Program-made: the position numbers and the translations under genes | Shown here: piece by piece, positions 5,395-64,000 of the stretch | Layout of the letters: every line of letters starts with the position of its first letter | How positions within the stretch are numbered: the first letter of the stretch is position 1 | The notes under the pieces: generated by a model | What the model saw: only the letters and a program-made list of their open reading frames with translations | What the model was told of the DNA's origin: nothing | The model's database searches: none | Assembly: GCA_047495785.1 (NCBI GenBank) | Contig: JBLDXI010000015.1 | Coordinates: 3,782,001-3,846,000, forward strand | DNA length: 64,000 bases | Origin: Lepidodermella squamata | Taxonomy: Eukaryota; Animalia; Gastrotricha | Reading direction: 5' to 3'

Positions 5395-7958
5395 ATGGCG
5401 AACAAGTCCTGCTCCAAGAAGAAGACTTCTTCAGAAGTCAAATCCAAACCCAAAACAAAATCGACAAAGAAGTCAACAGCCAAGGACACAAAATCCCGCA
5501 AGCAATCGAAAAAGGTCGTAGATTTGACGAAAACTGTCGATGATCCTAAAGAAGAGTTGAGTTCCGCTGTTAAAAACGAGCCGGAGGAATTCAAATTCGT
5601 AATTGATAAGAAAAACGATGTCTTAATCGAAGCTCCTCTGTACAAACCGATGGCACGAGTTAAGCCTCGGTCAGTTAAAGATGTGCTCGATGGACTGAAA
5701 TGTCACGCGAATCTTATCCCACCAAGTTCTGTTGACATGACCCTGCCAAAAGCTGCGATTGAAAACGCGAAAAAGCGTCAGAAGAGAGAGGCGAGAATGA
5801 AGTTGAAAAGGCTTAAAAGTGGCGCTAGAGTTGATAAAATTCAGCCGACGACTGAAGCTCCGGTTGATCCTTGGAAAGAGCCTGGAAAGAAGCGAAAGCG
5901 ATTGGATATCACTGCCCCGCTATCAGAGGAACCTATCTTCGCTTTACCTCTCAGTTACAATCCCAGCACTGATAGCGAAGCCCTGAGGTTGGCTGTTAAG
6001 GAGGCGGCCAAGGTCCTTACTGAACATGATCGCAAACACGCGAAAATCGAGCGAGTTGCTTCTCAAATCCGGAATGCGAAACCGCTGACTATTCGCGAGC
6101 AGATAGAGGAAATGTCTTCCGGTCTATTTGACGAAGATGCGAAAGAGAGTGAGAAAAAAGGTAGTGATGATGAGACGTATTTAAAGCCGACTGACAAGAA
6201 AGAAGTGAAGAAATTGACGTCGAAAGAGCGGAAGCATCGTAAATCTCAAGAGCGCATTCGTTTATTGGTTCTAAAGCGGAAGACTCAAAATCGTCTGATG
6301 CACGATTTCTACCGCCTTCGACAGATCAAAAACGAGGTTTCGGCTGAGGCAGCTCGCCGCAATGCTTCGCAATCGTTTGATGCGCAAAAGGAGGCGTCTA
6401 GGCGCCGAAAATTGGAGATCTGGCGAAAGATTGTGCTACGTAAAGCGACGATTCAGGCGATAAGGAAGCGCGAAGCAACGGCTCTGATTCAAAAAGCGCC
6501 GTCTGCGGTTATCGGGGATTCGAGTGACATGGGTCTGGAACCTGGAAAGAGCCTACGTTTGATTGAGGTTAGTTTCTCCGAGTCCTTTTCTACGGTTTTG
6601 TTCATTTTCTCTACGGATTTCTCTATCGGATTTTGTCTTCCATATAAAACTCAGCCTTTAATTGAATTTTGTGTCTGAGACCGACTGCAGATATTACTTA
6701 TGTACCAATTATAGTCTGCAAGACAATTAGTGTTAATTGAGCAGTTATACTAGATATTCAATAGAGCCAATACGTCTATTTTGCTCTATTTTTTATTTAG
6801 CACTAAAGATAAGGTTACGGTTTCCTTTAATCAACTTCTCTAAATATATCTTAATAGTTCAAAGAGGCCCGAAATAACGCAATTTATTAAGGCGTGTTGA
6901 GTTTGGGTGACATCAAAATCAAGGGTATATCAATTAATTTCACTGACAATTAAGACAAATTATCGCTGAATGTTGGACAAAATCGAGGCTCTACGTTGGA
7001 TAAATTTGATTTAATCAATAGCCATTATACAATTGCTGATTGATTGTTTGTTATGAAAGTTAAAATAGCCGTATCAAATCATCTCTCAATATAAAATTGT
7101 TGTATGGGGAAAAGAGTTCGTGAATCCCTTTGATGGCAAAACATACTGTCAAAAATGCGACTCAAATAAAAATTGTCGTAATATAATCGAATTTCCACAT
7201 TATATTCGACGTACGTGACTGGTTCGGCTCGGCTCGGCTCGGCTCTACGACAATTAAGCAAAAATGATAAATAACATTTTCTCTGCGCTAAAAATGTCTT
7301 TTCGACCCCGAGTCGGTGGGCCCCTTGAAATATAACTAAGTTGGGCAGTGTCTGTTTTCCGACGGTTTCTGTCAGATCCTCCGTTATTTAACGAAATTGT
7401 ACAATGAGTATGACGAAAGCCTTCCTTTGCCGATTGCCGACCATTTACTAGCGGCCTCAGAACCACAAATGACTGAAAATATCGGAATCAAATTGAAGTA
7501 TTTGAATATAATACAGTGAAAGTTGTGTAAACCGGAGTCTTCCATACCGTACGGATTTTGGTGGCTCTTGTAGAGGCTCATAGAGCAAATTTGGTCGTTT
7601 ACACTGAACTTGTCCTTAACCGGACGGATTTTGCCTGGTGATATCCTACTCCGGTTTACAACATTTTCACTGTATGTATTTCCGATGGTTCCAACGGTTC
7701 AAGTAAAACTGAAAACTGGTTCGAAAGAACAAATAAGTTCGATAATTTCATGTTACTTCCCAATTTTTATATTGCAATTTTAATCAATTTGTTCGTATTT
7801 CCACATTTCAGCCTCGAACGACCAGTCTGGCCTTCGAGAGATTTGTGGCTGCTCAGCGTCGTGGTTTGCTTATCGACTATCGACAAATGGAGCAGAGCCG
7901 ACGTGCTGTTTTCGCTCGCAAGCGGCACGGCTACAAAACCTTCGAGATCAATCGATAA
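5395..7958 (+). CDS. NOP53: Ribosome biogenesis protein NOP53 (GLTSCR2)
   Basis: Exon 5395-6567 (FVIDK, SYNP, basic K/R-rich helices, SLRLIE|gttagt) joins exon 7812-7958 (PRTTSLAFERFVAAQRRGLL...YKTFEINR*), which resembles the NOP53 C-terminus. Confidence 0.75.
7222..7246. repeat. (GGCTC)n microsatellite in the NOP53 intron
   Basis: ggttcggctcggctcggctcggctc. Confidence 0.7.
7514..7672. mobile_element. Tc1/mariner-type MITE (~159 bp) in the NOP53 intron
   Basis: ~25-bp imperfect TIRs CAGTGAAAGTTGTGTAAACCGGAGT / ACTCCGGTTTACAACATTTTCACTG, flanked by TA (7512-13) and TA (7673-74). Confidence 0.8.
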
Positions 7959-8674
7959 GAAAAACTGTAATATGTGTGCAAACGGCTTGTTATTTGATAA
8001 AATAAAGTCACTGTCTGGCCTCGATTTAAAACCTCTTTGGGCTTAGATCGGACACTGTGATTTTCCTTACAACAGTTTCGGGTTTTTTAGCGCAGCAAAC
8101 GTCTATTGTTGGAGAAAACGTATATTGGATTGGGACTTAATGATCAATCAACATATTTCCGAGGGTACATCCTCGTCCAGCTTAATTCATAGTGACAGTC
8201 TTTGACATGAATTGAATGGAATGTTTTCCACAAATTTGGCGATTCCTGCACAAACCTTAATTAAATAGTACAAATCCGGTCAAATCTTTAGACATTCAGG
8301 ACATGTGTCATACCTGGAACTCGTTCAGAGACCTGGGAGGATTCAGTCTAACAATTTAAGACAAGTCAAAAAAGCGTCGACATGAAAAGTTCAAAATTTT
8401 ATTGAATGTACACGTACATTTACGCGCATCACGCACAAGCTTCCTGAGCCGAGACATTTTTTAATCAACTATTCGTCGAGTTTTTTCCAATCGTATAACA
8501 ACAACAGACGTCTGTGCGATAAAACAGCGGATAAACAATAAAATGGTTATTACTATAATATTATTATCATTGCACCAAGAAAAAATTTTCAAGTCGTATC
8601 ACGCCGCATTTTTACATTGAGATGAAGTTGAAAAAAAACCAAAAGTAACAACGCAGTAGGTAATTGAGCTTTTT

Positions 8675-10444
8675 TTAGTCAGTTTCTGCCGCCTCGGTTT
8701 CTTCGATTTTTAAAGCATCGTTCGACGCTTCGTCCTGCTCCTTTTGAAGTTCATCGGCCAGCTCCGAAAATCCGAACTGCTTAGCCAGCGCCATAGCTAT
8801 GGTGTTCTTCTCAGTCTCGTTCGATGACGCATTCGAGTTGTCTTCGACAATGTTGATAACCGGCTGTTCGACGCGCGCATGCTTGACGCCACCAGTCGTG
8901 TTTTCGTCCAGTTTCCGCTTCGTCGACTCGTTTTTCAGTGGCGGCGGTGTGGCGAAAGTTGAGCGTTGCTGTTGCTGCTGCTGACCGGGCAATGGCGACG
9001 TGCCAGTGTGACTGAGCATCGCATCACGAGCCGTTTGCCTCGCCAAATGATACAAGCGCTCGCGGTGGGTGAGTAACACCGGCACCAGGGTGCACAGAGC
9101 GGCTGAGGCTTCGTTGACGCTCAACTCGTGGTACGAAAGGCTGCGATCTGGGTTCTTGCGTTTCGCGTCGAATCGGCCGAAAATCATCGAGAAACGACGG
9201 ACACCTTCGATAAAGCCACTTTGAGATGGCGGCGTCGACAACACAGCCTATAAAAAAAGTATATTATAAAAACTCCACCTTAATGATAATCAGTGCTTAC
9301 CAGAAGTTGCTGAAAGTCGTTCGCCTTCATGCGGGCATTTGAGCAGTCAGTTCGCGGGGTCAGGCTGAGTAGATCGGGGTGTTTCGCGAGCGTTTCAGCC
9401 GCCGCCAAAGCGATAGCACTTCGCATGTCGACTGCAAGCGTAACCGGTTGTTTCGACGCAGCGTTGACCATCAACAGCCCAGTTGCGTTCTCATTGACGT
9501 CTGACGAAAAATTTGTTGAACAGAACGACGACGCCTCGCTGTCGGTGTTGTCGGGGAAGTCACCGCTGTTGCTCGGCGACGTGTTGGCGCCGGAGTGATC
9601 TTCATGCTGGCGTTGAGGTAGAACCGGTAGCTTGTTGTTAGCGAAGTAGACGACTGACGGCGAGCCGGAGGAAGATGACGACGAGGCGGTTGGGTAGGCC
9701 GAGTGGGAGACAAGGCTCAGGTTGATCGGTGCCATAGTTGGGTCGATGGGTGTAGATTTCGAGGCGCTGCTGTGCTGCGACATCATGATCAACGACAGGG
9801 CGGCATCACCGGCGCCGCGAGGTGACACGCTCGATGCGTTTGATTTCGATGCGGACGAGTGAACACCCGTTATCGAGTTGGCAGGAGGAGGTGTGGAAGG
9901 CGGCAGGGCCAGACTAGTCTTCACTGACAATAAAGTAGCGCTTTCCGCCGGCGTCAAAGGAGCGCGAAAAGGAGCTGAAAATAAATAAAAATTAATTAAT
10001 TTAAATCGATTTTTTGCGTGAACCAACAAACCTGGACTATTATGCCATTCAGCTAGCGCTTTTTGAAGACGGCGAATGTGAAGGGGTTTTGAGGTCATGT
10101 CGACAAGACGAAGAATTTCAGCAAATTCCTCCTGGGTTGCTTCGACTAGTTGTTGAACATCATCACCGCCGTTTGACACAAACACATCGTAATAACCGAG
10201 CAGATTAGCGCGTTGTAGCAGGCGGAACAGTTCGACCTCTGAGGCAGAACGGGGCAAGTTACGAATCGCTGGCGACGTCATCATTTTAGGCTGGTTCGAT
10301 TCTTGGGGTGTAGGTGAAGGCGACGATGTCGATAAAGCTGGCGATGACGTGCGAGGTTGCAGGCTGACAGGCTTGTGCTCGTCTTCCTCCAAATCGTCGA
10401 TGTCGAGGTCGTCGTCTTCTTCGGCGCAATAAGCTGACGAAGTG
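8675..10444 (-). CDS. NAB: NGFI-A-binding protein (NAB, EGR co-repressor), NCD1 and NCD2
   Basis: NCD1: ELFRLLQRANLLGYYDVFVSNGGDDVQQL...PLHIRRLQKAL. NCD2: RRFSMIFGRFDAKRK...HELSVNEASAALC...LARQ. Exons 10444-10032, 9974-9301, 9247-8675. Confidence 0.93.
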
Positions 10445-10578
10445 CTGCAAAAGCGACACACATTAATAAAAATGAAAGTAATAATGGGCGTATGAAAAAC
10501 GTTTTGCGAGACTCAAATGCGGACTCTCATTATAACATTATTACTACTCATAAAATTAACACCGCGCGACGCACAAAC

Positions 10579-11369
10579 CTTTTTGCGCCTGAAACCTCCT
10601 CGTATTTAGCATCGCTACTGCTGTGCAAATTATTATCGTCGTCGTCAAAAATAACGACAGAACCTGGCTCCTTCTTCGGCCTTAAATCCAAGGGCGTCGA
10701 GTCGTAACCGGAACCTGCGAATTGACTGCCGTAATTGCCACTTGTCGGCATCATTGACATTGGGAGGAATGAGGCGGGTTTCATTTGACGCATTTTCGGC
10801 AGGCCGGGTAATCGCGGCTTGTGAACATGCGGCTCGCGGCCGACGTAAACGATCCGACCGCCGTTGGTGTGAACCTTTGCGCGGCACGTTCTGTTCGCGC
10901 ATCGCCAATACGTTTTCGATCGATTGTCTGAGATTTTCGAGAAAGAGTAGCCTTCAAAGCGTAGAACGGTGTAACCACGAGAAGTTCTTTCGAAAACAGC
11001 CGGGCCCAGGTCGCAGTAGACGCCTGGCGGGACTGGAGAGATTGAGCGAGGCGTGCCTTGAGCGGTTTGAGTCGGCGTTTGAGGTGTTGTAGGCGCTTGT
11101 TGATTATTTGTTTGAGACTGAGACGGCACGACAGGTGGGGCGACCGGAACTGGTTGCAACGCATTCTGCTGATGAGCGGCGAGTAGTGAGGCGAAAAACG
11201 AGGCGTGCGGCGGTAGGGTGGCGAAAAACGAGGCTGGCAGTGAGAGCGAGTGCGGCAAAAACGGCGACGGGTGATGATTAAGATGGTGGTGATGATGGTG
11301 ATCGGCGGCCGGCGTCGACTGAGGCGATGTGACAATGTTACCAGCAGAAGCGGATGCAACTGCGGTCAT
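10579..11369 (-). CDS. FLYWCH-type zinc-finger exon, probably the first coding exon of the NAB gene
   Basis: TSRGYTVLRFEGYSFSK...TYWRCANRTCRAKVHT...HVH matches the FLYWCH pattern. The phase-2 donor at 10578 matches the phase-2 acceptor at 10445. Confidence 0.75.
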
Positions 11370-13660
11370 TTTTATGAGTTCCCAAAAAAATCAGATAAAA
11401 ATTGAGGCTAAATGATGATGATGATTTAAATCGAGGCAAATGACATATTGAACAAGGGTAAAACTGAGTGGCATATTCGACGCGCGACGGTACATAGAGC
11501 CGCGTGATCGGAAAATAATAGGCATGGAAAAACTCTCTAATATCGGATGATTGATTACGATTAAAACTCTCGATAAAATAGACTTGTCAAATCTAAAGTA
11601 TATATTAATTTGGGTAATCTACTAGCGACAATTTTTTCTTCTAAGCGTCGCGCGTCCAACTGAGCATGACTGCGCACTCGACAAGCCTACGCAAGCTCTA
11701 CCCATCTATTTTGACTAATCAAAATCACCAAATTCAATTGCTAATATTGAAGAACGGATCGACATTGTATTAACAAAGTTCAAAAGCGACTTGTCAGGGG
11801 AAAAACTTGTCAACTGTTCGTGGGACTTTTTTGACACCTAAGGTACTAAGCATGTAAATCGACGCATTTGACACGGCGCGAGAGCGCGGTCACACTTGAC
11901 TGGATAATATATTTAATTTAATTCGCCCCGTTGTCGATGTAATAAGAACATCCAGGACAAGTCGGTGGGTTGCTAAAAATTGAAAACAGTAACTGTCACT
12001 GTGAGAGATTTCAGTGAAACTGCAAGTGCGAGGCGCTGTCTCACGCCGGCATTTCGCAGGCAGCAGCAGTATAGGAAGGTACGTGCGATTTGGGAAATAG
12101 CTGTTAAGAGCGTGAACGCGCATTTGACAAAAGTTTGTGGTGAATTCAAAAGATAGCGCGAACAATGGGCACCGGTGGGTTCGATTACGCGGACGCGAGA
12201 CGCTCGCAGGTGCTGCGCTTTGCCGTAAAGCGTTGCGCAACGCGAGCCGGGTCGAGCGACGCGCTTTTGGCCGCTCTGTGGCGGTGCGCGTTGCTCAACT
12301 ACAAAGAGGCGTCGTATAGGAATGACAACTGCAGCAACGTATACGGTGGGCAAAAACGCGCAGACACGGCGGCGCGAGTGATTTGATGGCAGCAGGATGA
12401 TCCGTATCGCGGCCATGCGCGAGTGCTGCGAGACGACGTTGACGCGTCGAAAAGTTCGACCCGTGCGGTAACCGACCGTACGGTATAAATGTGCGAATTC
12501 GTCATAGTCGCCGGCTCGAAAAGCGGCTTGCGCAAGACGCGACGAGTAATTACACTCCTTTTGTTCCGTCCTCTCAATTATTGCCCAACGGCAATATAAA
12601 TTACCTATACGATGTGTATGTGTCGTAGCCACTTTTTAACTCAGAGAGCGCGAGAGAGTCCGCATTTCTCAGGTGTTATTTACCAAAAATCGTAACTATA
12701 TTACGGCCTAATTTAGCAGACGGGTATTACCTACCTGTCGCGTTCACCAGACGCTGACGTTGACCACACGGGTAACAGTGGCCCTGAGAAAATTTCATTA
12801 GCAATGTTGCCCAGATTCACTATAAATGGACATTAAAACTTACAGATAGATGTCCTAAGACGATTCAGATTAAAATCGACAACGTATATGTCGTCACTGG
12901 ATACGCCGATTTTATTCGAATTAAGCGCTGATTCCTATAGAATGGTATAAAAAAATCATTAGCAATTATTTGAGCAATTAATTATCAATATGGGCAAAAT
13001 CGGAAGCTTCTGATCATTATGATCATTGATGACAGAGTCCGTTATGGGTAGAAAATTAATCAAAATTAAATTTGATTAATTTTCTTAAAAAGTTAATTAA
13101 GTTAATTAAGTTAAAAATTAGAAAATTAATCTGCGGAATAATAGTTGGTTGCTATTGCATTCTTTTATTTTTATAATTAACTTGAGGCATTTACATGATT
13201 TTTTTCTAACAGCAACGAATACAGGGTCAGTAAAGCACGTAGAACCTTGTACAACGCTTGTAGTTTTTAAAGGGCATAATAATTTAAAATTCTACTGTGA
13301 GACCTGGATATAACAAGGTTTGGTTCTAATAAAGCATTGGCGGTCAGTGAGTAGCTAATCAATGTCTTTTACGATTTTTTATTCGGTGAAGAGTCGGGTA
13401 ACAAAATTATGGCTAAATCGACGGCCTGAAAAATCCATCTTAATCTACAGCAAACCGAATTTTTATCGCATTTTTGAATTTTCATTCCTGAAAATATTAT
13501 TTCAATTAGTTGCGTCAGTTGAAAAACTTGAGCCCACGTATAGAGGGGATGGCGAACGCAATAATTCGTAATAACAATATACACACAGAGTGTACAACAC
13601 TCGCCTCGCCTCGCCTGATAAAAAAAAAGGAGAAGAAGAGGAAGAAAGTGCTCAGCGAGT

Positions 13661-14321
13661 TGCGTGGGCTTTTCTTTCGAGGCGTAGGCGTCGCAGCACA
13701 CATTTAGTACGAACGTAAAGCAGTGCTCATAGCCGCTGCTCGTTTGATTTTCGCCAAAGTAGCAATAATAATAAAGCCGTCAGTGCTTGGCGAGCGCGCA
13801 AAAAACACGCTCCGAATTAGCGCAGCTCTGAAAAAAAATCAACGAAGAACAAAAAACGTGAATTTAATAAAGAAAAAAACTGTGCACATGTGTGGGGGAA
13901 GAAATGAGCAGAAGCCAGCGGGCTCTTTACGACGTGGGCGGGGATATATCGGCGAGAAGTTTTTCGCTCAGGAAAACTCGTCCAGGGGCCGCGCGTGGCC
14001 GGAGGTTTTACAGCGCTGCATTACCCGGCCTGTAGTCGTCGCCGCCCGCGTAATGTTTAGAAATAAACCAGGCTCTTTCTTGTCACATATCAGCTGAAAA
14101 ATGAGCCACCCTCCTGTCTGAAACTGAAATTAATGTGATGTGTGTGATAATAATAATAAATGTAAGCCTCGCGAGCCGATATAGTACAGGACCGAGGTGC
14201 AGCGGGGTCTGCTCTTGCTCTCTCGTGTGCTGCAGCCCAGCCACCGCCGCCGACGCCCCCGCAACTGCCAGCCTCCTCGCTCGCTCAGTCAGTGAGCAAA
14301 TAAAATTGGCTCGCCCCCGCA
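13661..14321. promoter_or_regulatory. Cluster of EGR (Zif268/Krox)-type binding sites upstream of NAB
   Basis: CGCCCCCGCA at 14254-14263 and 14312-14321; GCGTAGGCG at 13682-13690; near matches TGCGTGGGCT (13661) and ACGTGGGCG (13932). Confidence 0.6.
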
Positions 14322-15616
14322 CTCCAAGCCTTGTGTTGTTATAATGTAATCATAGAACGGACGCGCGTCGCCCTCCTCCCCTCTGTTTTTTTCCACTGCG
14401 GGCAAAATCGAACAGTTTTCCATTCGTGCACCCACTCTCCGGAAACAGACACGACGTAAAAATCAGAGCGCGTTTTTTTGTCAATACAAACCGGCAATAT
14501 TTAACGATGAAAAATCGAAAATGGCGACACACATTATCGTGTTGACAATTTTATTGCATGACATTTCGGCTGAAATTGTTACATATTAAGGCGTTTTTTT
14601 AACGTGTCCCTAAAGTCACGACACGACAAGCTATTTTATCAGCGAAAGCATCATTTTTTCTGAATCATGAATTCAACAGTGAGAAGCGAGTCTATCCGAC
14701 TTATCACACTTGATGATGTGTTTAACCACCGGAGCAGCAATAGTTGTTTGACAGGCAAGCAGTTTACACGATTTCACCCCTAAAAACAGAAAAATATTCA
14801 ATGTAATAATTAATATTCCATCATAAGTGAGCAATTCTTTTCCGCGAATTTACGACCGAAATTAGCAGGCTACACCAGAATATATTATAAGGAGGAACAA
14901 AAAGGTCGAAAAAATAAATTAAGGGCAGGTCGAAATATCAGGCAGATGCCTTCTAGTGCGAACTCGTGTGATCGCTCATTCGTTTCAACAGAATATCGAC
15001 GGGTTGAACTTGGAGCGAAATTACCCAGCTTAAAGAAGGGTGTGAATTTTTGTCTGGCACTTGTCACCTTTAGTCAGCCATATGCCTTATTTTGTCCGAC
15101 AGCCCAAAAATTGACTTGAAAGAAGACAATAAAATTGACTCAAAGCTAAGTTTTAGTGAATTTTAGCAGATAAATCAGGAGGGCCTCCGTGACCGTAAAT
15201 ATTAACTAATAGATACATAAGTCGATTTTGTATCAACATCTGATAGCATCGTCGGTTTAGCACGTGAGAAAAAATGATTGGCAAACCTCTATCTAATCTT
15301 AGCTGAATCCATCCAATTCCAAGTAAAACTTTCAGGCTGTTGGATGAATGAGACATACTTAATTATGTCTGACCTCTTAAAGGAGCAGCTATTGTAATTT
15401 ACTCTAATTTTTTATAAGCAGAATCCAAGAAAATGAGGCCCAATTCCTAATATATTTTCAGACTTTTCCGATGTTCAAAAAATAAAAGGCAGGACCTCAA
15501 TCTAAGGCCTTCACATTGCCTATATTTTATGGTAATAAAAAAGTTTTTTCATGGTTGAAAAGCCCATACAAATCTCCATTTTTTATATATCGCTTGCTGA
15601 ATTTGTTTCGAAGAAC

Positions 15617-16807
15617 TCACTTGCGGATGTGCTCGGCGACAGTCCAGTCAGTCTTGAGCGGGATCGATTGCTTGATCTGAACTCCAGCCGACGTGATAAT
15701 TGCAATATCATACTGAAATTTGGAAGAAAATAGATAAAAATTAGGATTGACACAAAGCGAATTAAGAAATCCTCCGACAATGAAAAAATAAGCCTAACTA
15801 ATTGTTCCGAGTTCGAAATGTTTGACATTCACGGTTTATAAATCAATTCGCAAAATTGACGGATATTGACAAGATTTACGTCTGTGGAGGCAATTATCTC
15901 GTAACGCATCGAGATAATCGAGATTCGATCTTTGACATAATGCAGTAATTTGCGTGAGCAATGGCCCCAAATAACATGGGATGACTTGAAAAACAAGTTA
16001 ATTCCTCAAATATACGAGCGATGAAAGGATTTCCTAAAAATGTTGCGTCAAAAGACTGCTCTACGCTTTCATTTGTAAATTATAGAGTCCATCCTAGAAC
16101 CTAAAGTGAAATAAAATGTAACTAACCTTGTCGTAAGAGCGAGCATCGCGGTAGAAAAGAACGCGTTGGCATTCATCCAGCAACTTCTCGGCTCCAGCCT
16201 GGTCGAGCTTATCAGTCTTCTCCAAAGCCGAGCGCATGATCGGCTGAGCCATGTAGGCGCCAAGGCCGGTCGCAATCGACGGAGCCTCGTACGCAATACC
16301 GAGCAGGTCGACGTAGCCGAGGAAGGGCACAGTGCCGCCTTCTTCCATTCCAGCGACGACCAGGCGGTTCCAGAACGGCTCGAACTTGCTACGGGCGTTG
16401 TACATAACGCGGGTTAGCCACGAGTAGACAGCGCGAGGCGACAGCTGCACGCCGTCATTCTCGCAGTAGTCGTCGACGATCATTTGCTGGATGTGGCGGT
16501 TCAGGTACTGGAAATCGGCGATTTCACCTGACGCAGCAATCACAACTCGGTCATTGACCTTGATAATGCGGTGAATGTTGCGAAACTTGGCCAGAGAGCC
16601 GTAAGAAACCAAGGTATCAGCAGCCAGGGCGACACCACCGTCGAATTTGACCCCCAAAACTGAGGTACCAGTCGTAATGGGCGAGCTAAAAGAGTTATTG
16701 AGGTTAAAAAATCAAGCTCGTGACCTCAATTTTTACCTCATATGGGTATGGGGCTCAGCCTTGGCATGAACGGGAGCATCGAAAACAGTAGCCGGGGTAG
16801 ATAGCAT
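15617..16807 (-). CDS. PSMB4: Proteasome subunit beta type-4 (beta7)
   Basis: Three exons (16807-16737, 16685-16128, 15712-15617): SPITTGTSVLGVKFDGGV...SYGSLAKF...IATGLGAYMAQP...VLFYRDARS...TDWTVAE. Confidence 0.95.
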
Positions 16808-42399: not shown

Positions 42400-45300
42400 T
42401 CAGCTGACGGGACATTCGACATAATCGGTACCGGCAATTGTAGGCACCGAAAACGCATATAGGGCTGAAAAATAGAAAATTAAAATTCCACCTTAAAATT
42501 TATTTGCTTTACTCACCTGCTCTCGATAGGTATGTCAGAGTGCCGAAACGACCAGATGGGGCCGAATCGTAGAAATAAGCGCAAATGCCGGCTGGTCCGT
42601 GGCAAATCGGCGACGATTCGCGATTCGTTCGACGGCGGTAGTTGCTGCCGAAGTTAGCGCAACAAGACTTTGCCGCGCCGCCTTCAATCGCGCTCTGTTC
42701 CTCCAGGAACAAATCATTCGCAGCCGCTATGACACGATCAACATGAATTGTGCCGTGGAACATGATCAAACCATGGTCGTTTTCGGATAACGTCGCCAGA
42801 CTCGATAGAGCCTCGACGAAAAGTTGACGGTAGTTCGGGTCAGGCACACGATTTAAGGCGGCTTCAACGTGCAACGCAAATTTCAGTTCGTGTTGCGTCA
42901 TTTCTCGAGTTAGAGAAGACGGAATATGTCTATCGAAGACTACTATACCCTCGCAACGTTCCAACAACCGCCAAACACTGGCGTAAAATCCGATCGGGAC
43001 TCGATTAAGGGAGCCGTCAAGACGCCGCCGCCGGAACCATTGGCCATGGCGGTAGACTTCGCCAACGTCCATTTCTTCCTCGGATTGGCCGTCCTTCCCG
43101 TCGTCTGTTGATGCGTTGCTGAGCGTGCGTTCAAAGGCGAAAACTGAGGGTAGGCGATCGCCACTCCTGTCGACGCCCTTATCCGGGCCCGGGCTGTTCG
43201 CCTGTGAGAAACTGTGTTCGCCCGCCAGTTCTTTCGCGAAATGAGACGCCTGGCGCGCGAAGGAACGTTTCGAAGCGCGACTAGTCACCATTTGGCCGAC
43301 GGACATGCTCGACGCGGCGCGCATGCTCTTGTCGCTCGGGGCCAGTTCGGAGCCGGACAGCACTCGAGATAGCAGGGTTTTCATTTGAAACGGACTCAGG
43401 TTGAACAGGTGCTCGGTCGCCTCCTCAGGCGTACACGACATCATAGCACCCAGCTCGCTAGCCATGACCTAAAAAATTACGTTGTTAATAAAACGAAAAG
43501 AAGGAAAGGGAATATTTAAATAGAACCACATTTTATATCCGATAAAAAATTTGACCGCTAACAATTAAAAAACGATAATTTTTCGAATTTTTCGAATTTC
43601 CTAGAAAAGCGCAAGTGTTTGGCTTGAAAATGAGCGATTCTTAGCTTTCCCCAAGCCATGAACAAATTGTTCAAGTAAATATTAAAATTTCCAGTTTTAG
43701 ACCGTTGGGATGTTCCAATCCTCCTTAAACAGAGAAAATCATTATTTAGCCGATAAGTCCAACTGTTTCAGATTGATGCGAAGCAACTAGCATAACTATT
43801 GGAACTTATGAATATCTAGTGAAATTTCTCACATCAGAATAAGAACTTCAAATAAAATCGACTGAGACCTAAAAATAGCTAAATATTTGAAAGGTGAGGC
43901 TATGTTCAGCATCAGTTGATAATTCATCAACTGATGCTGAAAATGGAAACTTTTTAGGGCGGTTTTTTAATTTCAATTCGCGCTCTTTAGCTTAGAAGCC
44001 CATTTTCACCCATAGCAAGGCTGATGGTTAATAGCTTCGTTTTGATATCGACTCAATTCAAGTTTATTGAAACCTTGAAATTGCTTCAAACTTTTTCATT
44101 CAATTATTTTCGACCGAAAAAAAGATAAAATAGGATCCTAAAAATGAAAATTACCTGTGTAATAAGACCGATGCGAATGCGCAACATGTTGCTGAAAAGC
44201 CGAGGTTCGCTCTTCATAAGCATCGAAAGGTCGACTATCAATTCTTGGGTGATAACCGTCAATGTCGGATCGCCATTGCAAGTCGATCGAATCAACGCCT
44301 CGAGTTCATCCGGCGGTAACGGGGTGGTCACTACTTTTTCGCTGGGTTCAGGTGGTAGACCGATTGTCACCTGTTTTCCGCGGACCAATACGTCGGTTAG
44401 ACATTTGGCGAGGTCATCGGGGCGACGGCGCAATACCCCGGCGGCGTGACGAACCAGCCACCACTCGCGGGTCTCCGACGCGCGGTCACCCAGTTCAGCG
44501 ACCAGGTCTTTGACCGGGCAGCCAAACGGCGTCGGCCAGTCGAGACCTTTGGCCAGGTACAAACAATGAATCAAATCGGCTTGTTCGTGAAGATTGCTCG
44601 TTTCACGCAGAGATTCAATCAGCTCATTGATATCACTTTGCAACGCGAGTTGGATGGCTCCGATCGAACTGGGTGACGGGTGCATGGTGACTAACAGATT
44701 CGACGGGCGGGCTCGAGGGGTTGTAGCCAGTGGCGAATTAGCTATGTCGGAACAACTCGCCGACACCACCATACCGCCTTGGGGTGAGCAGGAAGACGGC
44801 CTGGCTAATCGCTGCATAGGCACCCCGCCATGATGCTCGACCGTACTGATAAACTCATCCAAACTCAATTCGGTCAGGGGCACAAATGCGGCTATCGACG
44901 GGTCTAGGGTGGTATTGATGTTGTCTTTTCTTGAATTCGGGGTCGTTCGGTCGTTGTCACCGGGTAAGAACTCGGCCGATGCCGGGCGCAAATTCGGCGT
45001 TGGGTACACAGATTGGCGCCGCTTTGACACGATACCAGCGACGCGTTTCGCCGTCATCGACATGCGCCGGCCCACATCGCGAATCGAATGCTCGGTATCA
45101 TTCAACTTGCTGTCATCCTGAGACTCGGCAACAATCGACGACAGCCTAGCAACAGGGTGGTGGGATGAGTGCAGCTGAATGAAGCGATCTAGCGACTGCT
45201 TCGAAAAGTGCTCAGAATGCTCGAGGAAGGACAAACGCGTCACGCAGGACGTTGAAATGAACTGCTTCAGGGTACCAACTTGCACCCGATGACCGCCGAT

Positions 45301-47174
45301 AATACCCGATTGAAGGTTCTGAAGCGCTGATATGAAAATATTTCTCGCCTCATCGGCCTGGTCCAGCAAGCGGTGGTTGATCGTTAGAACAACCGTAGGG
45401 CGCCCGAGCATGGTCCAATTTTTGTTTAAATACGCAACAGTCGTCGTGAATACATCAATGAGAAATTCGTTGTCCAAACCGAGGTAAAACACCTGTTGAT
45501 CGAGGAAACTGGGCGAAAACACGAAAACTTCGTCGTGTAACATATACAGCTTTGACGTAGCAAGCACGCCCAGTTCGTTGGAGGCGCGACCGGACAGGCC
45601 GAGGCGTTTATTTTTCCCCAAATGGGAGTAGAGGTACGAAAGAATTCGGGCGCGATGAACATGAACCGGGGCGGCTTCGTTCAAAGTTTGGCAAACTATG
45701 CCGTGTTGTGCGATTCGTTCTTTGATTTCAAGATCTTCCGCCAGGATAACAACCTGGGTTACAACTTCCGGCCGGGTTTGGCTGATCAATCGGCGGTTAA
45801 GGGGGTCGATCTCTCCGGGTGAAATCAGCCGTTCGTAGACCATTCTCGCGACAATGTACAGCGATTGGCCCCATTTGTGGGGCACTCGGCCGAACGGGTG
45901 GCGGGCCTGCGAGCCCGGGTTAGCCCGTTCAAGAGCGACTAGTTCCGGGTCGACCCGGTACAGCTCCGGTATGACGTCGATGCCGTCATGATGCACAGTT
46001 AGGGCCTCGAGGCGCTTCAACAACTGCCCAGCATCGCTAACATCTCGCTCAATATCGGCTTGATGATCCTCGTTTGAGCAGGCAACGTTATGATCGCCAA
46101 ATAAAGCATCAAGAGCCAAATATGCAAAGAAAATTGGCCACTCGCACTCGATATTCTGAAAAAAAATTAAGTAGGATTTTTCAGTGGAAAAGCGAGATTT
46201 CTTACCTCAAATAGTTTAAGCTCATGAAGTTCGTAGTGAAGCCGATTCGGGTCTTCGAGAGCTGTTTTGTAGCCGTCTCGTAAAAATCGTTTACAGCCAT
46301 GTTTGCCCTCCAATTTTTCGCGAATTTCACGTTTCGTAGCCTCTACAACTTGCCGGTCTTCAACAGCAAAAGCCGGGTAGCCAATGACAGCTAAAACAGC
46401 CGAATCGACCTCTTTCGATAGTGACTCGCGCGGCAACATTGACAACAAAACAGCGTTACACATTGAAGTTTCGTCAGGTAGCGTGTGGATTAAGGAGGCT
46501 GAACCGCCCTGCGCGCCGAATAGATTCAACCCGTCAAGGGAGCGAAGAGCTGCGTGGGCCATACCCACCGAGCTAGCATTCAGCTCAGTCAAACCGTGAT
46601 TCGTCTTATCACCCCGCTCCCAAATACCATAATCAGGAATACGATACGCGGCTTCGATGTAAAATACAAGATTTTGAATGAAAGCAACCTCATCCAAGGT
46701 GCGGATAATCTGAAGGCCGGACGTCGTAGTTTCAGCAAGGATAAGCAGGTACAACGAAACGGCGTCGAGTTGTAAATGGCCCCATTTGTCATCGGCGACA
46801 ATTGGTTGACAAGTCCGGCTGTCGTATTTCGCATGCAGCGAATCAATCGGAGCTTGGGTCACCTTAAATTTCTCCAATTTTTCGCGTTGAAGCATAAAAC
46901 AACGTAAAAGGCCTCGCATCAGCCGGACTACACATTGCTCGAATTCATATGCCTTCGCTCGGTCGACCTCGCTATCGGACGATTTTCGGTAAACGAGGGA
47001 CAGCGCCCACACGGCGAGGATTGAATACACATTATCACGAATCCACGCGTCCGGATTTTTATCGGTGTCAGCTATCAAACCTGTGACAGGGTGCTGCAAC
47101 TCTAGAATAGTTTTTGACACCACCCGGGTGAAATAGGTTATTCGAGCTGACGACGAAGCTGTTCGTCGCCGCAT
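42400..47174 (-). CDS. PHKA: Phosphorylase b kinase regulatory subunit alpha, copy A
   Basis: [52 protein letters not shown]; C-terminal CaaX CPVS*. Exons 47174-46206, 46155-44155, 43468-42517, 42464-42400. Confidence 0.93.
43905..43941. repeat. Perfect 16-bp inverted repeat with a 5-nt loop in a PHKA-A intron
   Basis: TTCAGCATCAGTTGAT aattc ATCAACTGATGCTGAA. Confidence 0.85.
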
Positions 47175-47570
47175 TTTGTCAACACTAGTCCGTCAATTTC
47201 ACTCGATATATCATTCGCTAAGATTTGCCTAAAAAAATTGGAAAAAATTGTTTCATTTCAGTATTTATAATAACGATTTTCATGGTGTTAAGCACCGCTC
47301 GGACGTAAAATAAACGGCAGGGAAACTAAACGTGACGTAACACAAGGGAAGACAAGATAATTTTTGATGGTGTCGTTTGCAATAAATATTAATTCAAGTA
47401 AGAAAAAGACAGCTCACAATATTTTAATTAAAAAACAACAAGTACAAATTTGACAAGCAACTTCGCGTCTACCACAGTCGAAGAAAGAATACTACGGGAT
47501 GGCAAAAAAGCGCAAAATTATATTCAATAGTGATGTCATCATAATCTTCAAATGTACAAAAATAAGGCAA

Positions 47571-50500
47571 TCAGCTAATCGCGCAGTCGATTGTATCAGA
47601 CCCGGCTGTTGTTGGCAGGGTGAATGCGTAGGTGGCAGCTCGGGCGATGTAGGACAGCGTGCCGAATTTGCCAGACGGGCCAGAGTCGTAGAAATAAGCG
47701 CAAATACCACTCGGCCCGTGGCAAATCGGCATGGGCGGCTTTTCAACACCACCCCGCATGATTTCACGCCGAAACGTCTGGCCAGCCTCATTCGCGCAGC
47801 AAACTAGGGCGGAGGCGCCTGGCATCGTTTCTTGATCGGCGAGGAATAGATCGTTAGCCGCGGCGATTAAGCCATCGACCTGAACGTGCCCGCGGAAACC
47901 AGTCATGCCGTGGTCGTGTTCGGTCAGCGTTGTCAGCACTGAAATCGCTTCGACGAAAAGTTGGCGGTAATTCGGGTCTGGGATGCGATTCAAAGCCGCC
48001 TCAACGGTCAGCGCGAATTTCAACTCCTGCTGGGTCATTTCTCGGACGAGCGATGACGGCAGTGCCCTGCCGTAGATGATCAAAGCATCACATCGGTTCA
48101 GAATTTGCCAGACCCCAGCGTAGAAGCCGAGAGGTACCCGGTTCAACGCACCGTCTAGACGGCGACGACGATACCAAGTGCCCCGGGTGACGATTTCAGA
48201 CACGTCTAGTTCCTCCTCTTCCTCGGTTGAAATAGCGGAGGTCGGGGTGTTAGTCCCGGACCGATCGCTAGAATCTTGCCGATCGAATGCGAAAACGTTG
48301 GTGTTGCCAGCTGAACCAGGCGTAACAGGTTGAACCTAAACGGAAAAATCATAAAATTATTGCGTGTTGTTACAAAAAAATGTTGACAAACCGTTCCTAA
48401 CGCCTCGGCAACATGGCTGGCTTGTCGTGTGAACGACCGCTTAGAGACTCGATTCGTGACCATTTTTCCGACAGACATTGTCGACATGTCGCCACTGCGA
48501 TGTTTAGGTGCCAACTCGGAGCCAGAAATAACTCGATAGAGCATGATTTTCACCTGATAAGGACTCAGGTTGAACAATTGACTCGTCGCTTCCTCCGGCG
48601 AGCAAGATAACATAGCCGCTAGTTCACTGGCCATTACTTGGGTGATCAGCCCGATGCGAAGTCGAATCATGTGGCTGAATAGGCGTTTCTCACTCTTAGC
48701 CAGGTTAGACAATGCAATAAGAAGTTCCTGTGTTAACACGGTGAGACTAGGGTCATGGTTACACGTATTCCAAATCATTGTTTCCAGTTCGTCGGGCGGT
48801 AACGGCCGTGAAACCACCTTTTCGTTAGGTTCAGGCGGTAGACCAAGCGAAACCTGTTTGCCTCGAACCAGCAGGTCAGTCAAACATTTCGCAAGATCTT
48901 CAGGCCTTCGGCGCAGAACTCCGTTAGCGTGACGAACCAGCCACCATTCGCGAAGCTCAGCCGCCCTCTCCCCTAATTCGGCAATCAATTCTTTAACGGT
49001 ACATCCCAGTGGGGTCGTCCAGTCTAGACCCTTCGCCAGGTACAACGCATGAACCAAATCGGCCTGTTCGTACAAATCTGTTGTTTCTTTCAAAGAATCG
49101 ACCAATTCGTTGATATCTGCGTGAGAAACTTCGTGAGATGAGCCCAGTGATTGAGGATTTGGGTGTTTCGTGACCAGCAAATTCGAAGGCCGAGCTCGAT
49201 TAACCGCTCCAGTAGGTGGGAAAACCATCGATCCAAACGGGCTGTCGGTAACGTTAGCTCGAGCCAAATGAGTCGACGCAGTCATCGGAGCGCCGTCTGT
49301 CTCACATTTAGAGATGAACTCTTCGAAAGATAGAGCCTCAGATGACGGGTTAGTGATATTGGTATTATGAGGCAAAGCCGGGGATGTATCCCCTGTATCT
49401 TCTCCCGACGAAGCTGATGGTCGGAACTGCCCAGGGACCTGATAAACAGATTGCCGACGCTTCGAAATCACCCCCTGAAATCGCTTGGCAACAAGTGATT
49501 TCCTTCGATTCAATGGTTGACGATGACTTGCTGGATATGCGTCCTCATCGGCAACCGGAACGGCAGAGGGCGCGAGCTTTGAAGTCACAGTTTCTGCTGA
49601 GTATTGTGAAATAAATCGCTGCAATTGTTTATCCGAAAATTCGTCAGAATGTTCGAGAAATGACAGACGTGAAACGCAGCTGGTGGAAATGAAGTCTTTC
49701 AAATAGCCGACTTGAACACGCTGACCAGCTATGATTCCTGATTGAAGGTTTTTCAAGGTCGCAATCATAGACTCTCGGGAAGAATCATTGTGATCCATTA
49801 GCCTGTGATTCAGAACAACAACAACCGTGGGCCGACCTAACATAGTCCAGTGTTGATTCAAATACGCGACAGTCGTTGAGAACATGTCGATTAAATACTC
49901 GGCGTCTTGGCCCAAATAGAACACGCGTTGATCGAGAAAACTTGGTTGAAATGCGAAAATCTCGTTATGGAGCATGTATAACTTGGACGTAGCAAGGACT
50001 CCAAGCTCAGTCGAAGCTCGACCTGACAAACCAAGGCGTTTGTTTTTGCCGAGATGAGAATACAGGTAGGAAAGAACCTTAGCATTGTGAATGTGCATAG
50101 GTGCGGCCTCGGCGATCGTTTGACAAGTGACACCGTGCTCTTCAACCCGTTGTTTTATTCCGTCATCTTCTGCTAGCAAGACGACCTGCGTGACTACTTC
50201 AGGTTTTCGGTGGCTAGTCATGCGACGATTCAGGGGATCCAGCTCGCCAGGGCTGAGAAATTTTTCGGCGACAAGCCCAGCGACAACATATAGCGACTGT
50301 GCCCACATGTGCGGGATTTTCCCAAGGGCGACGCGCTCTTGACTACCTGGATTTTTGTACTCTTCGCCAACTTTTTCAAGTGGAACGCTGTACAGCTCTG
50401 GCACAGCTTTCATCGAGCTCTGAGAAATCAACAAAGAATCAAGTTTATCGAGGTATGCTTTGGCGACAGCTCCAGATTCTGTTGACGGGTCAGTTGGATC

Positions 50501-51596
50501 ACCGCAAACAGAACCGTTGAACAACGCATTCAGAGCCATGTAAACGTAAAATAGCGGCCATTCACATTCAATATTCTACAAAGTATAATAATATAAAGCA
50601 TGAAAAACAAGTTGTAATTATTCTTACTTCGAAAGCTTTCAATTCATGAGGTTCGTAATGCAGGCGGTTTGGATCTTCCTTGGCAGTTTTGTAACCATCA
50701 CGCATGAATCTCTTGCATCCATAACGTCCTTCGAGTTTCAATTTTATCTCATTATTTGTTCTTTCAATCAAATCTTGGTCGTCGACTGCAAAGGCAGGAA
50801 AGCCAATTACAGAGAGCAAAGCAGAATCGACTTCTTTTGAGATGGATTCGCGGGGCAACATTGATGTTAATACAGCAGCACACATTGAAGCTTCATCCGG
50901 TAAGGTATGAATCAAAGAGGAACTGCCACCTTGCGCTCCAAATAGATTTAATCCGTCGAGAGCCCGAAGCGCAGCGTGAGCCATACCTACGGAACTTGCG
51001 TTAAGTTCTGGAAGGCCGTGATTTGTCTTATCGCCTCGCTCCCAAACGCCGTAATCGGGAATTCGATATGCGGCTTCAATATAGAAAACCAAGTTTTGAA
51101 TGAATGCAACCTCATCCACCGATTGAATTATAAGCACTCCAGAGGTAGTAGCTTCGGCTAGAATAAGAAGATATAAGGAGACTGCATCCAATTGTAGATG
51201 ACCCCACTTGTCATCCGCGACGATTGATTGACAATTACGACAATCGTATTTTGCATGAAGCGAATCTATGGGATTCTGAGTCACTTTGAATTTCTCGAGC
51301 TTTTCCTTCTGAAGCATGAAGCATTTCAAAAGACCACGCATAGTTTTCACAAAACTTTGTTCAAATTCGTATCCCTTCGCCCGATCGACTTCGGAATCCG
51401 ACCGTTTGCGGTAAACAATCGACAGGCCCCACACTGCGAACACAGCATATACGTTGTCTCGTATCCATGCATCTGGGAATTCAACGTTAGAAGGAATAAG
51501 CCCTGTGATCGGATGCTGACGCTCGAGTATCGTTTTGGTCACAACACGAGAATAATAAGCTATTCGCGATGAAGAAGATTGTGTCCGATTTCTCAT
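47571..51596 (-). CDS. PHKA: Phosphorylase b kinase regulatory subunit alpha, copy B
   Basis: Same motifs as copy A; C-terminal CaaX CAIS*. Exons 51596-50628, 50575-48392, 48335-47571. Confidence 0.93.
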
Positions 51597-61585: not shown

Positions 61586-64000
61586 TCATTGGATGTAAGA
61601 GGCAATTTGCGATTTGCCATTCGATTGCACTTCACTCGCGTTCAGATCGCAGTCTTCTTCGAAGTCCTCCATCATCTCGTCGTCCTCGTCGAGAATTTCG
61701 TCGTCGACAACCGACGCCGATGACGTTGTTAAGGCGGACGAGTCCGTCAACGGCAGCCGGCCCGCCGGCATTTCAGCCCGCGGGAAGATGGCCAGCTCGT
61801 TCGAAGCACCCTCAGAGCCCTTCACCACCTCAGATTCCAACTCGCCGTCGGTCGTGTGCGACTCGGTCGAGTTGATCGTAGCGCCGCATTCGTGTTTCCG
61901 AACATGCCGCTCGAGGTTGGTCGACTGCGCGAACGACTGGTCGCAGTACTGGCAGCGGTACGGCTTCTCCTTGTTGTGAATATTTCGAACGTGGCGCTGT
62001 AGGTTCGACGAAATCGAGAAGGAACGCTCGCAGAACTTGCACTTGTACGGCTGTTCGCCCGTGTGCGTTCTCAAGTGTCGCGTCAAATTCGCAGAACGAG
62101 GAAAGAGTTTGCCGCAGAATCGGCACGTGTAGCGGTCCCGGTTTTTAACCGAAGACGACGTCGGCGCCGGGTGGTTGTGGCTGTGGTGATTCCGATGGCC
62201 GGTCGATTGAATTTCATTGGCCGAGACAACAGGCGATGACGTCACGTTGTTGTTGCTGTTCGACGGCGGTGATGAGAACCCGCTGTCCGCATTTGCCGGC
62301 TGCTTCTGACCCTGGTACCCGGTCAGCAGGCTTTGCAGCTTCGCGATTTCGAGCGGGAGGCCGAGAGTTGCGGATGACGCGTTGTTCGCGCTCAGGGCGA
62401 GCAGGGTGGCCCAGGGCGACGCGGGTGCCGGCGGGGTGCTCGGGACCGGGGTCGGCGCCGGGTTCAGCCCCATCAAACCAGCCAGGCGGGCGTAGGTCTC
62501 CAACTGCTGCCTCTGCTGTTGTTGCTGCTGATTCTGCGCCAACAGGCTCAAAATCGGGTTCGACGAAAACGGAGACGCGGCTTGTTGCTTCGCCGCTAAT
62601 TGCAACAACTCGACCAAGTTCGAATTCTGCGAATTTTGCTGACCCTGGAACACGTTAGACGGCAGCTTATCGTCCGATGCCGATGACGACGGGGTTGAAA
62701 CTGGCGGCGATGGCTGGTTATTAGGGTGGCGCGGCACCGGTGACGCAGCGACTGGTTTGACGATGGCCGGCCTTTTCACGGACAGGTCGAGCGCGGCTGG
62801 TTCCGGCTCGGATTTGACGCGTTTCGCGGCGGACAAATCGAAAGCTTGCTCAGCAGATCGCTTCATCTCGACCGGCTTCTCCTTCTTCGGCTCGGCGACG
62901 ACCACCAACGGCTGTTGTTTCGGCTGTTGTTGCTTCACCAACTCGTTCATCGCCACCTGGAGCAGGGCGGTTATCGAGGCGGATGAGCCGCCCTGGCTAG
63001 CGGTTTCGAGTAGGTTGGGCAGCAACGCGCTCAGCGGGTTGGTTGGTACGAAGGCGGACGTTCGCGAGGTCAGATCTTGAGCCGGGTGCGACGAGGTCGA
63101 GGAAGATGAGGATGTCGATGAGGCGGATGGCACCTGTTTGTGGCCACCGTGCATGGCGATGGGCGACGGCAGGCCGCACGACCCGATTTGGTTCGCCATC
63201 GCCATCACCGGCGTCGAGCTGGTCGGCGGCGCGGCGATGTGCAGCGGTTTCGAGTGGCTGTGGTTGTGGTGGTGGTTGCCTGATTGCTGGTGGTTACCTG
63301 GGGTGCTCCGGCTAGGGCGCTCGCTCGTCGACGGCGCGCTGGGTTGAGGCGACGGCGCGGGCGGTTGGCCGCCGTTCGCTGCCAGGACGGCCTCGCAGAA
63401 TCGACGGTGCTTTGAAAGCGAAGTGACTGTCGAGAAATGCTGGCCGCATTCCGAACACCGGACTTGCTGGCGACAGTCGGCGTGCATCCGCTTGTGACGG
63501 CACAAGTTCGAAAACTGGGTATAGGCCTTCATGCAAACCTAGAAAAAATGAAAAAAAATTAGAAAAAATGTTGGAAAAACTCGTTTCAAAATTTTTAAAA
63601 ATTAATTAAAAAATTTTCAGAATTTTTTCATAAATAATTAATAATTAGTTAAAAATTAATTATTTAATAATTTTAAAAATTAAATTAAAATTTAGAATTA
63701 AATTGAATAAAAAAAATAATCAAAATTTTTTTACCTCGCACTGAAACGGTTTAACTGAGCTGTGAATGTGCTGGTGTTGCTTGAGCCCGGAGCTGGTAGC
63801 GAAAGACTTGCCGCATTCGTCGCAGGTGAACGATCGCCCAGCCGGCGAATGGAAGGCACGGTAGTGGCGTTGCAGGTTGCCAGGGTCGCAGAACGTTTTC
63901 TCGCATTCAGGGCACTGGAAACGGCCGTCGTTGCGCACGTATTTCAGCGGCGAACCGAGCGGGTCGTTGGGGTCGTTCGACCAAGTATCCGCGCCGTTCA
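61586..64000 (-). CDS. MECOM: MECOM/PRDM16/hamlet/EGL-43-family C2H2 zinc-finger factor, 3' part
   Basis: [25 protein letters not shown]|[19 protein letters not shown]; CtBP-type motifs AFDLS and ALDLS; [31 protein letters not shown]...[17 protein letters not shown]; acidic tail; intron 63734-63540. Confidence 0.93.

Follow-up and report, generated by a model that had tools for sequence, protein, structure and literature searches.

The 64-kb stretch of the Lepidodermella squamata genome analyzed here (contig JBLDXI010000015.1; the whole stretch is referred to as the window) carries a gene for a NAB co-repressor, and upstream of this gene lies a cluster of EGR-type binding sites which goes beyond chance and is specific in comparison with generic GC boxes. 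Within 660 bp (13661-14321), three exact and four one-mismatch matches to the EGR consensus GCG[T/G][G/A]GGCG, sought on both strands, are found, making this the top EGR-type cluster of the window. A cluster of the same type is seen upstream of NAB in a sister species. The cluster is in all likelihood real and maintained by selection; the fuller reading, in which an EGR-family factor would bind it and NAB would be induced, is given a probability of roughly 0.55.

EGR-Type Sites Upstream of NAB

Pfam analysis of the open reading frames (ORFs) of the window places the NAB gene on the minus strand, and the sites described here therefore lie 5' of it. The most distal is an exact consensus site, TGCGGGGGCG (forward CGCCCCCGCA), at 14312-14321 on the minus strand, in NAB sense and ~2.95 kb upstream of the ATG. 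The same exact site is repeated 58 bp away at 14254-14263, also on the minus strand, where it is overlapped by the one-mismatch site GCGTCGGCG (14248-14256, minus strand). On the plus strand follow the one-mismatch sites GCGTGGCCG (13993-14001) and ACGTGGGCG (13932-13940), the latter overlapping a GGGCGG GC-box core at 13936-13941, and then the exact site GCGTAGGCG (13682-13690) with the one-mismatch site TGCGTGGGCT (13661-13670) 12 bp from it. Outside the cluster stands an isolated near site of the minus strand, TGCGTAGGCT (forward AGCCTACGCA), at 11684-11693; ~315 bp separate it from the ATG downstream. An earlier note on this DNA had listed six sites, all of which are found where it placed them; GCGTGGCCG and GCGTCGGCG were absent from it.

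Four exact consensus matches are present in the window where 1.15 are expected, and three of the four fall within 13682-14320. Dinucleotide shuffles of 13600-14400, which control for local GC and CpG content, lead to an expectation of 0.05 exact and 0.96 near matches against the 3 and 7 observed (P ~0.0005). The earlier note had called for a comparison with other CpG-rich sequence, and the enrichment is seen there as well: 295 CpG-matched 800-bp windows elsewhere average 0.57 near sites, with a maximum of 4 near and 1 exact. The observed/expected CpG ratio is 1.31 for the genome and 1.21 for the cluster region, so the region is not special in this respect. Of 1512 permutations matched to the consensus in composition, EGR variants alone showed the highest joint enrichment in the spacers of both species, the best-ranked being RCGKGGGCG, GCGKRGGCG and GCRKGGGCG; because EGR-type patterns lead this ranking, the cluster is considered motif-specific.

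Canonical motifs for Sp1 (GGGGCGGGG), KLF (GGGCGTGG) and WT1 (GCGTGGGAG) occur neither in the window spacer nor in that of the sister species. An explanation by generic GC boxes or a CpG island was rejected based on the CpG-matched windows, the CpG ratios and the absence of these motifs. That the sites cluster by chance or as a consequence of a base composition rich in GC and CpG could be argued from the CpG richness of the genome and from the motif itself, which holds two or three CpGs, but this is contradicted by the local shuffles, the CpG-matched windows, the permutations and replication in a second species, and it is left with hardly any probability.

Recurrence in a Sister Species

A search with the NAB exons, queried one by one and not as a spliced protein, led to a scaffold of an ENA metagenome carrying one close relative, P0001, with 41% identity. 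The gene order of this sister locus (L001, 14.5 kb) is the same as in the window: proteasome, a 1.72-kb spacer, FLYWCH, NAB and Nop53. Coding DNA is 70-74% identical between the two species; the spacers do not align, and MAFFT gave no meaningful alignment of the CpG-rich block of the window with the sister. All six EGR sites with one mismatch or better in L001 lie within 423 bp of the spacer (7683-8105), where 0.2-0.4 sites are expected, and one of them is a perfect GCGTGGGCG. Of the seven sites of this quality on L004, a 15.6-kb contig that overlaps L001, six are in the spacer, and the same fraction of near-consensus sites falls upstream of NAB when both contigs are combined (~21 kb).

Conservation in related species had been put forward in the earlier note as a check, and it is seen in two respects, as the cluster recurs in the orthologous, unalignable spacer and weight matrices are successful across species in both directions. 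With a matrix built from the sister sites alone, 11 of the 19 top hits in the window fall in the 6.6% of it that lies upstream of NAB, and with a matrix built from the window sites, the top five hits in the sister are all in its NAB spacer. Among the words enriched in both species, an unbiased k-mer screen likewise ranked CGTGGG, GTGGGC and CGTGGGC near the top at k=6 and k=7; TTGCGCA was first at k=7 and TTGCGCAA first at k=8. The 11-mer GACGTGGGCGG at the window site 13932-13940 is found again at L001 8071-8081 in the same orientation relative to NAB, although one shared 11-mer between spacers of this size is the chance expectation and is not significant alone. Another, TTGCGTGGGCT at the 13661 site, recurs within the sister cluster at L001 7766-7776 in the opposite orientation relative to NAB.

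Contigs L002, L004 and L005 belong to the sister species itself, with spacers 99.6-99.9% identical and sites without variation; the comparison therefore rests on two species. No further relatives appeared in two metagenome scans, made with the FLYWCH and NAB alignments, and a search with the FLYWCH protein matched the sister only.

The sites could be real and selected and be read by a different C2H2 factor (WT1/Klumpfuss-like, Sp/KLF-like or lineage-specific), without an EGR-NAB circuit. GCGGGGGCG, which we take to be a WT1/Sp-type site as well, is a point in its favor, as is the one window site that overlaps a GGGCGG core. Human NAB2 is also reported to be a WT1 target (PMC5675621). The sister sites, however, are mostly T-type and GCGTGGGCG-like, the form typical of EGR, and with the canonical Sp1, KLF and WT1 motifs in neither spacer, another C2H2 reader is regarded as unlikely.

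Other Conserved Elements of the Spacer

As mentioned, the two distal exact sites are 58 bp apart, and between them a CCAAT box is present in NAB sense (14305-14309, minus strand). The arrangement is the same in the sister, where sites at 7683 and 7721 of L001 flank a CCAAT box at 7708-7712. Initiator-like motifs of the TCAGT type are seen near 14284-14293 on both strands, with TATA-like motifs nearby. The CCAAT box, TATA-like and initiator-like motifs at the cluster hint at a promoter.

The palindrome TTGCGCAA, which we take to be a C/EBP-type consensus, occurs only twice in the window, at 12233-12240 and 12528-12535. The sister locus likewise has no more than two copies, both upstream of NAB, at L001 8461-8468 and 8684-8691 (L004 2782 and 3005), and every one of the four copies has the EGR cluster on its upstream side and the NAB ATG on its downstream side. 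Between the palindromes of each species lies a 15-mer, at 12395-12409 on the minus strand of the window, that is identical and colinear with L001 8597-8611 and is the sole alignable anchor between the two spacers. The palindrome pair and the 15-mer look like a second conserved regulatory module, a suggestion made post hoc from the k-mer screen. Both window palindromes are contained in a block at ~12140-12560 with a CpG observed/expected ratio of 1.77.

In NAB sense, the window order is the EGR-type cluster, ~1 kb of AT-rich DNA, the CpG block, the near site at 11684 and the ATG at 11369. In the sister, these elements follow one another likewise but over a shorter distance, with an EGR site, CCAAT box and EGR-like site at 7683-7729, further sites to 8105, the palindromes, and the ATG at 9013. 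It is the ~1-kb AT-rich insert which makes the window spacer longer than that of the sister. Consensus motifs for the serum response element (SRE), the cAMP response element (CRE), AP-1 and ETS were found in neither spacer.

Within the AT-rich insert, a 36-bp near-perfect palindrome (AGAAAATTAATCAAAATT / AAATTTGATTAATTTTCT) is present at 13050-13085; no second copy was found in the window, and it may be the remnant of a small inverted-repeat element.

The NAB Gene and the Surrounding Locus

The NAB gene is recognized from two exon ORFs on the minus strand, one at 9280-10461 with the NCD1 domain (SAM; SAM_NCD1; Pfam E=1.9e-34) and one at 8675-9244 with the NCD2 domain (Pfam E=1e-23); both the partner-binding domain (NCD1) and the repression domain (NCD2) are therefore kept in the protein. 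Across NCD1, the identity to vertebrate NAB2 is 57-65%. A FLYWCH zinc-finger ORF identified with Pfam at 10548-11369 (minus strand, ATG at 11369) is presumed to be the first coding exon, and the gene appears to have gained this exon. The sister species shares the N-terminus of the ORF, MTAVAS, without any change, and this speaks for 11369 as the start codon.

The upstream neighbor is a two-exon gene of the proteasome beta-4/beta-7 type at 15619-16657 on the minus strand. As its last exon ends near 15619, the spacer upstream of NAB is 11370-15618, or 4.25 kb. The earlier note had described this spacer as gene-free and unusually long, and both descriptions hold, the first as far as the searches below reach: no other spacer of the locus is as long in the window, and the same is true of its 1.72-kb counterpart in the sister. 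No sign of a hidden gene was obtained: a six-frame comparison with the sister and sensitive blastn detected no conserved coding potential, Rfam gave no family at the gathering threshold or at E<=1, and the repeat search found no copy of the spacer elsewhere in the window. Gaps between neighboring genes in the window are merely ~85-200 bp, pointing to short 5' untranslated regions (UTRs) and arguing for a transcription start near the ATG.

In both species the cluster has the 5' end of NAB on one side and the 3' end of the proteasome gene on the other, and its target could conceivably be the proteasome gene, or a non-coding transcript of the spacer that is not annotated, rather than NAB. This draws on the sister cluster, which starts just ~400 bp past the proteasome stop codon, and on the TCAGT-like initiators that are found on both strands. 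A housekeeping proteasome gene would, however, need an element 3' of itself, the sister spacer is too small for a further gene, and neither coding conservation nor an Rfam family was found; a target other than NAB is thus considered very improbable.

The sister ORFs for the proteasome protein (L001 6567-7289) and for NAB NCD1-NCD2 (L001 10001-11263) are intronless, where their window counterparts are interrupted (at 15713-16127 in the proteasome gene and at ~9245-9300 in NAB), so intron content differs between the species.

A Proposed Mechanism and Its Relation to Known NAB Systems

The interval 13661-14321 is proposed to be a homotypic cluster of Zif268/EGR-type sites that would serve as a cis-regulatory module of the FLYWCH-NAB gene, acting either as a distal promoter followed by an intron in the 5' UTR or as an upstream enhancer. 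Selection would have kept the cluster in both species, although their neutral DNA has diverged beyond alignment. In the most likely mechanism, a three-finger factor of the EGR family would occupy the sites and raise NAB transcription; if NAB then binds the EGR-family factor through NCD1, as it does in vertebrates, delayed negative feedback could follow. The earlier note had proposed such an EGR-NAB circuit, and the cis-regulatory half of it is well supported, as the cluster is specific, is not explained by GC boxes or CpG content, and recurs in the sister. For the other half, we infer EGR as the binding factor, NAB as its target, the direction of the effect and the closure of the loop. The wiring by which EGR induces NAB in mammals is probably present here also, closure of the feedback loop is proposed only tentatively by analogy with vertebrates, and a role in wounding is plausible on the same grounds.

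The mammalian part of the earlier proposal, that NAB2 is activated by EGR1 via clustered promoter sites, agrees with published work. In the mouse, six conserved EGR sites have been described for Nab1 and three to four for Nab2; Egr2 leaves footprints on them, and they confer activation on reporters (Srinivasan et al. 2007, PMC2235890). As cited in the same paper, Egr-1 stimulates the human NAB2 promoter in a negative feedback (Kumbrink et al. 2005, via PMC2235890), and a genetic demonstration places Krox-20 (Egr2) and the Nab proteins in a feedback loop in the hindbrain of vertebrates (Mechta-Grigoriou et al. 2000, via PMC2235890). The L. squamata locus resembles the mammalian NAB1 and NAB2 promoters in that several GCG[T/G][G/A]GGCG-type sites are clustered 5' of NAB and kept between species, and the product has both NCD1 and NCD2. 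It differs in the distance of the cluster from the ATG (0.9-2.95 kb), in that the cluster as a whole is conserved and not its aligned sites, and in the FLYWCH exon with which the NAB gene starts; regulation by EGR is here predicted from motifs. Mammalian Nab2 is also co-regulated by ETS factors, whereas ETS sites are absent from the spacers here. With the hindbrain circuit, the proposed logic of an activator that induces its own co-repressor is shared; the hindbrain loop was established by genetics in vertebrates, in contrast to the cis-motif evidence here.

The NAB proteins of worm and fly are described with other partners. MAB-10 of Caenorhabditis elegans is a cofactor of LIN-29, Drosophila Nab is a cofactor of Rotund and Squeeze, and in Drosophila the enhancers of nab react to Notch/Su(H)/Dpp (PMC10584935; bioRxiv 10.1101/036038). 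These are orthologous co-repressors that share NCD1 with the protein described here; EGR-site clusters driving nab are not reported in those papers, whereas the cis content here is EGR-type and C/EBP-type. As NAB of worm and fly is tied to LIN-29, Rotund and Squeeze, loop closure on EGR is not a given. EGR could drive NAB while NAB acts through partners of this type or through its own FLYWCH finger, giving a feed-forward or cross-regulatory arrangement and no feedback loop. The worm and fly cofactors fit such an arrangement, as does the FLYWCH exon that the window gene seems to have acquired. The domain with which vertebrate NABs bind EGR, NCD1, is nevertheless strongly conserved, and nothing observed here points to loss of an R1-type domain from EGR; EGR-driven NAB without feedback is considered improbable.

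Several observations, the invertebrate partners just mentioned among them, weigh against an EGR-driven NAB gene. Literature searches yielded no report of EGR-to-nab regulation in an invertebrate. The distance from cluster to ATG is 2.3-2.95 kb in the window and 0.9-1.3 kb in the sister, and site positions and orientations do not correspond one-to-one between what are two species only, so conservation is demonstrated at the level of the cluster and not of aligned positions. A G at position 4, as in both perfect TGCGGGGGCG sites, is disfavored by Egr2 (PMC2235890). The only three-finger gene in the window, a minus-strand ORF at 61586-63532, is MECOM/PRDM16-like, judging from the sequences of its fingers: in a stretch of GC 0.60, it encodes 648 aa, in which zinc fingers at the N-terminal edge are accompanied by PLDLS-like motifs and, toward the C terminus, by three C2H2 fingers, and its product looks like a MECOM/PRDM16/hamlet-type protein and not an EGR. 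Lastly, an unrelated, GC-rich NAB locus (L008, a Logan SRR30639611 contig) has no EGR-type enrichment upstream of NAB, which implies that the wiring is not universal.

No cluster was seen at the Saccoglossus NAB locus (L006) or the Xenopus laevis nab2 locus (L007), both of which are full of assembly gaps. As the Xenopus positive control lacks a cluster, the comparison over a wide phylogeny is uninformative.

Other NAB Loci and Further Genes of the Window

L008 comes from an intron-poor third organism; there, the gene preceding NAB encodes an Aquarius helicase. The 850-bp spacer upstream of NAB (5745-6593) has an Sp1-type GC box, CCGGGGGCGGGGC, at 5844 and no EGR cluster.

At the Saccoglossus locus (Saccoglossus kowalevskii GL012786.1, 10001-29821), NAB adjoins a STAT gene in convergent orientation. 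In human, NAB2 and STAT6 are adjacent, and the NAB-STAT linkage may be ancient.

Elsewhere in the window, the minus-strand ORF pairs 44104-46119/46167-47174 and 48206-50539/50568-51596 both match Glyco_hydro_15; for the minus-strand ORF 42509-43465, the match is to the phosphorylase b kinase C-terminal domain. The interval 42509-51596 looks like two tandem paralogues of a phosphorylase kinase regulatory subunit.

Implications for EGR-NAB Wiring

The two-species comparison of motifs indicates that regulatory content is recoverable even where the spacer DNA itself can no longer be aligned. It also leads to a compact prediction, consisting of ~660 bp and seven named sites.

A wider and more speculative picture, to which we give low odds, is that EGR control of NAB predates the vertebrates and that here a compact EGR cluster and two C/EBP-type palindromes, a possible immediate-early input, drive a NAB that has gained a DNA-binding FLYWCH finger of its own and, once induced, might repress without being tethered by EGR.

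If an EGR-family factor does induce NAB through these sites, the wiring in which an activator induces its own co-repressor would not be a vertebrate invention and would be common to at least one distant invertebrate lineage, in contrast to the work in fly and worm that ties NAB to partners of the LIN-29 type.

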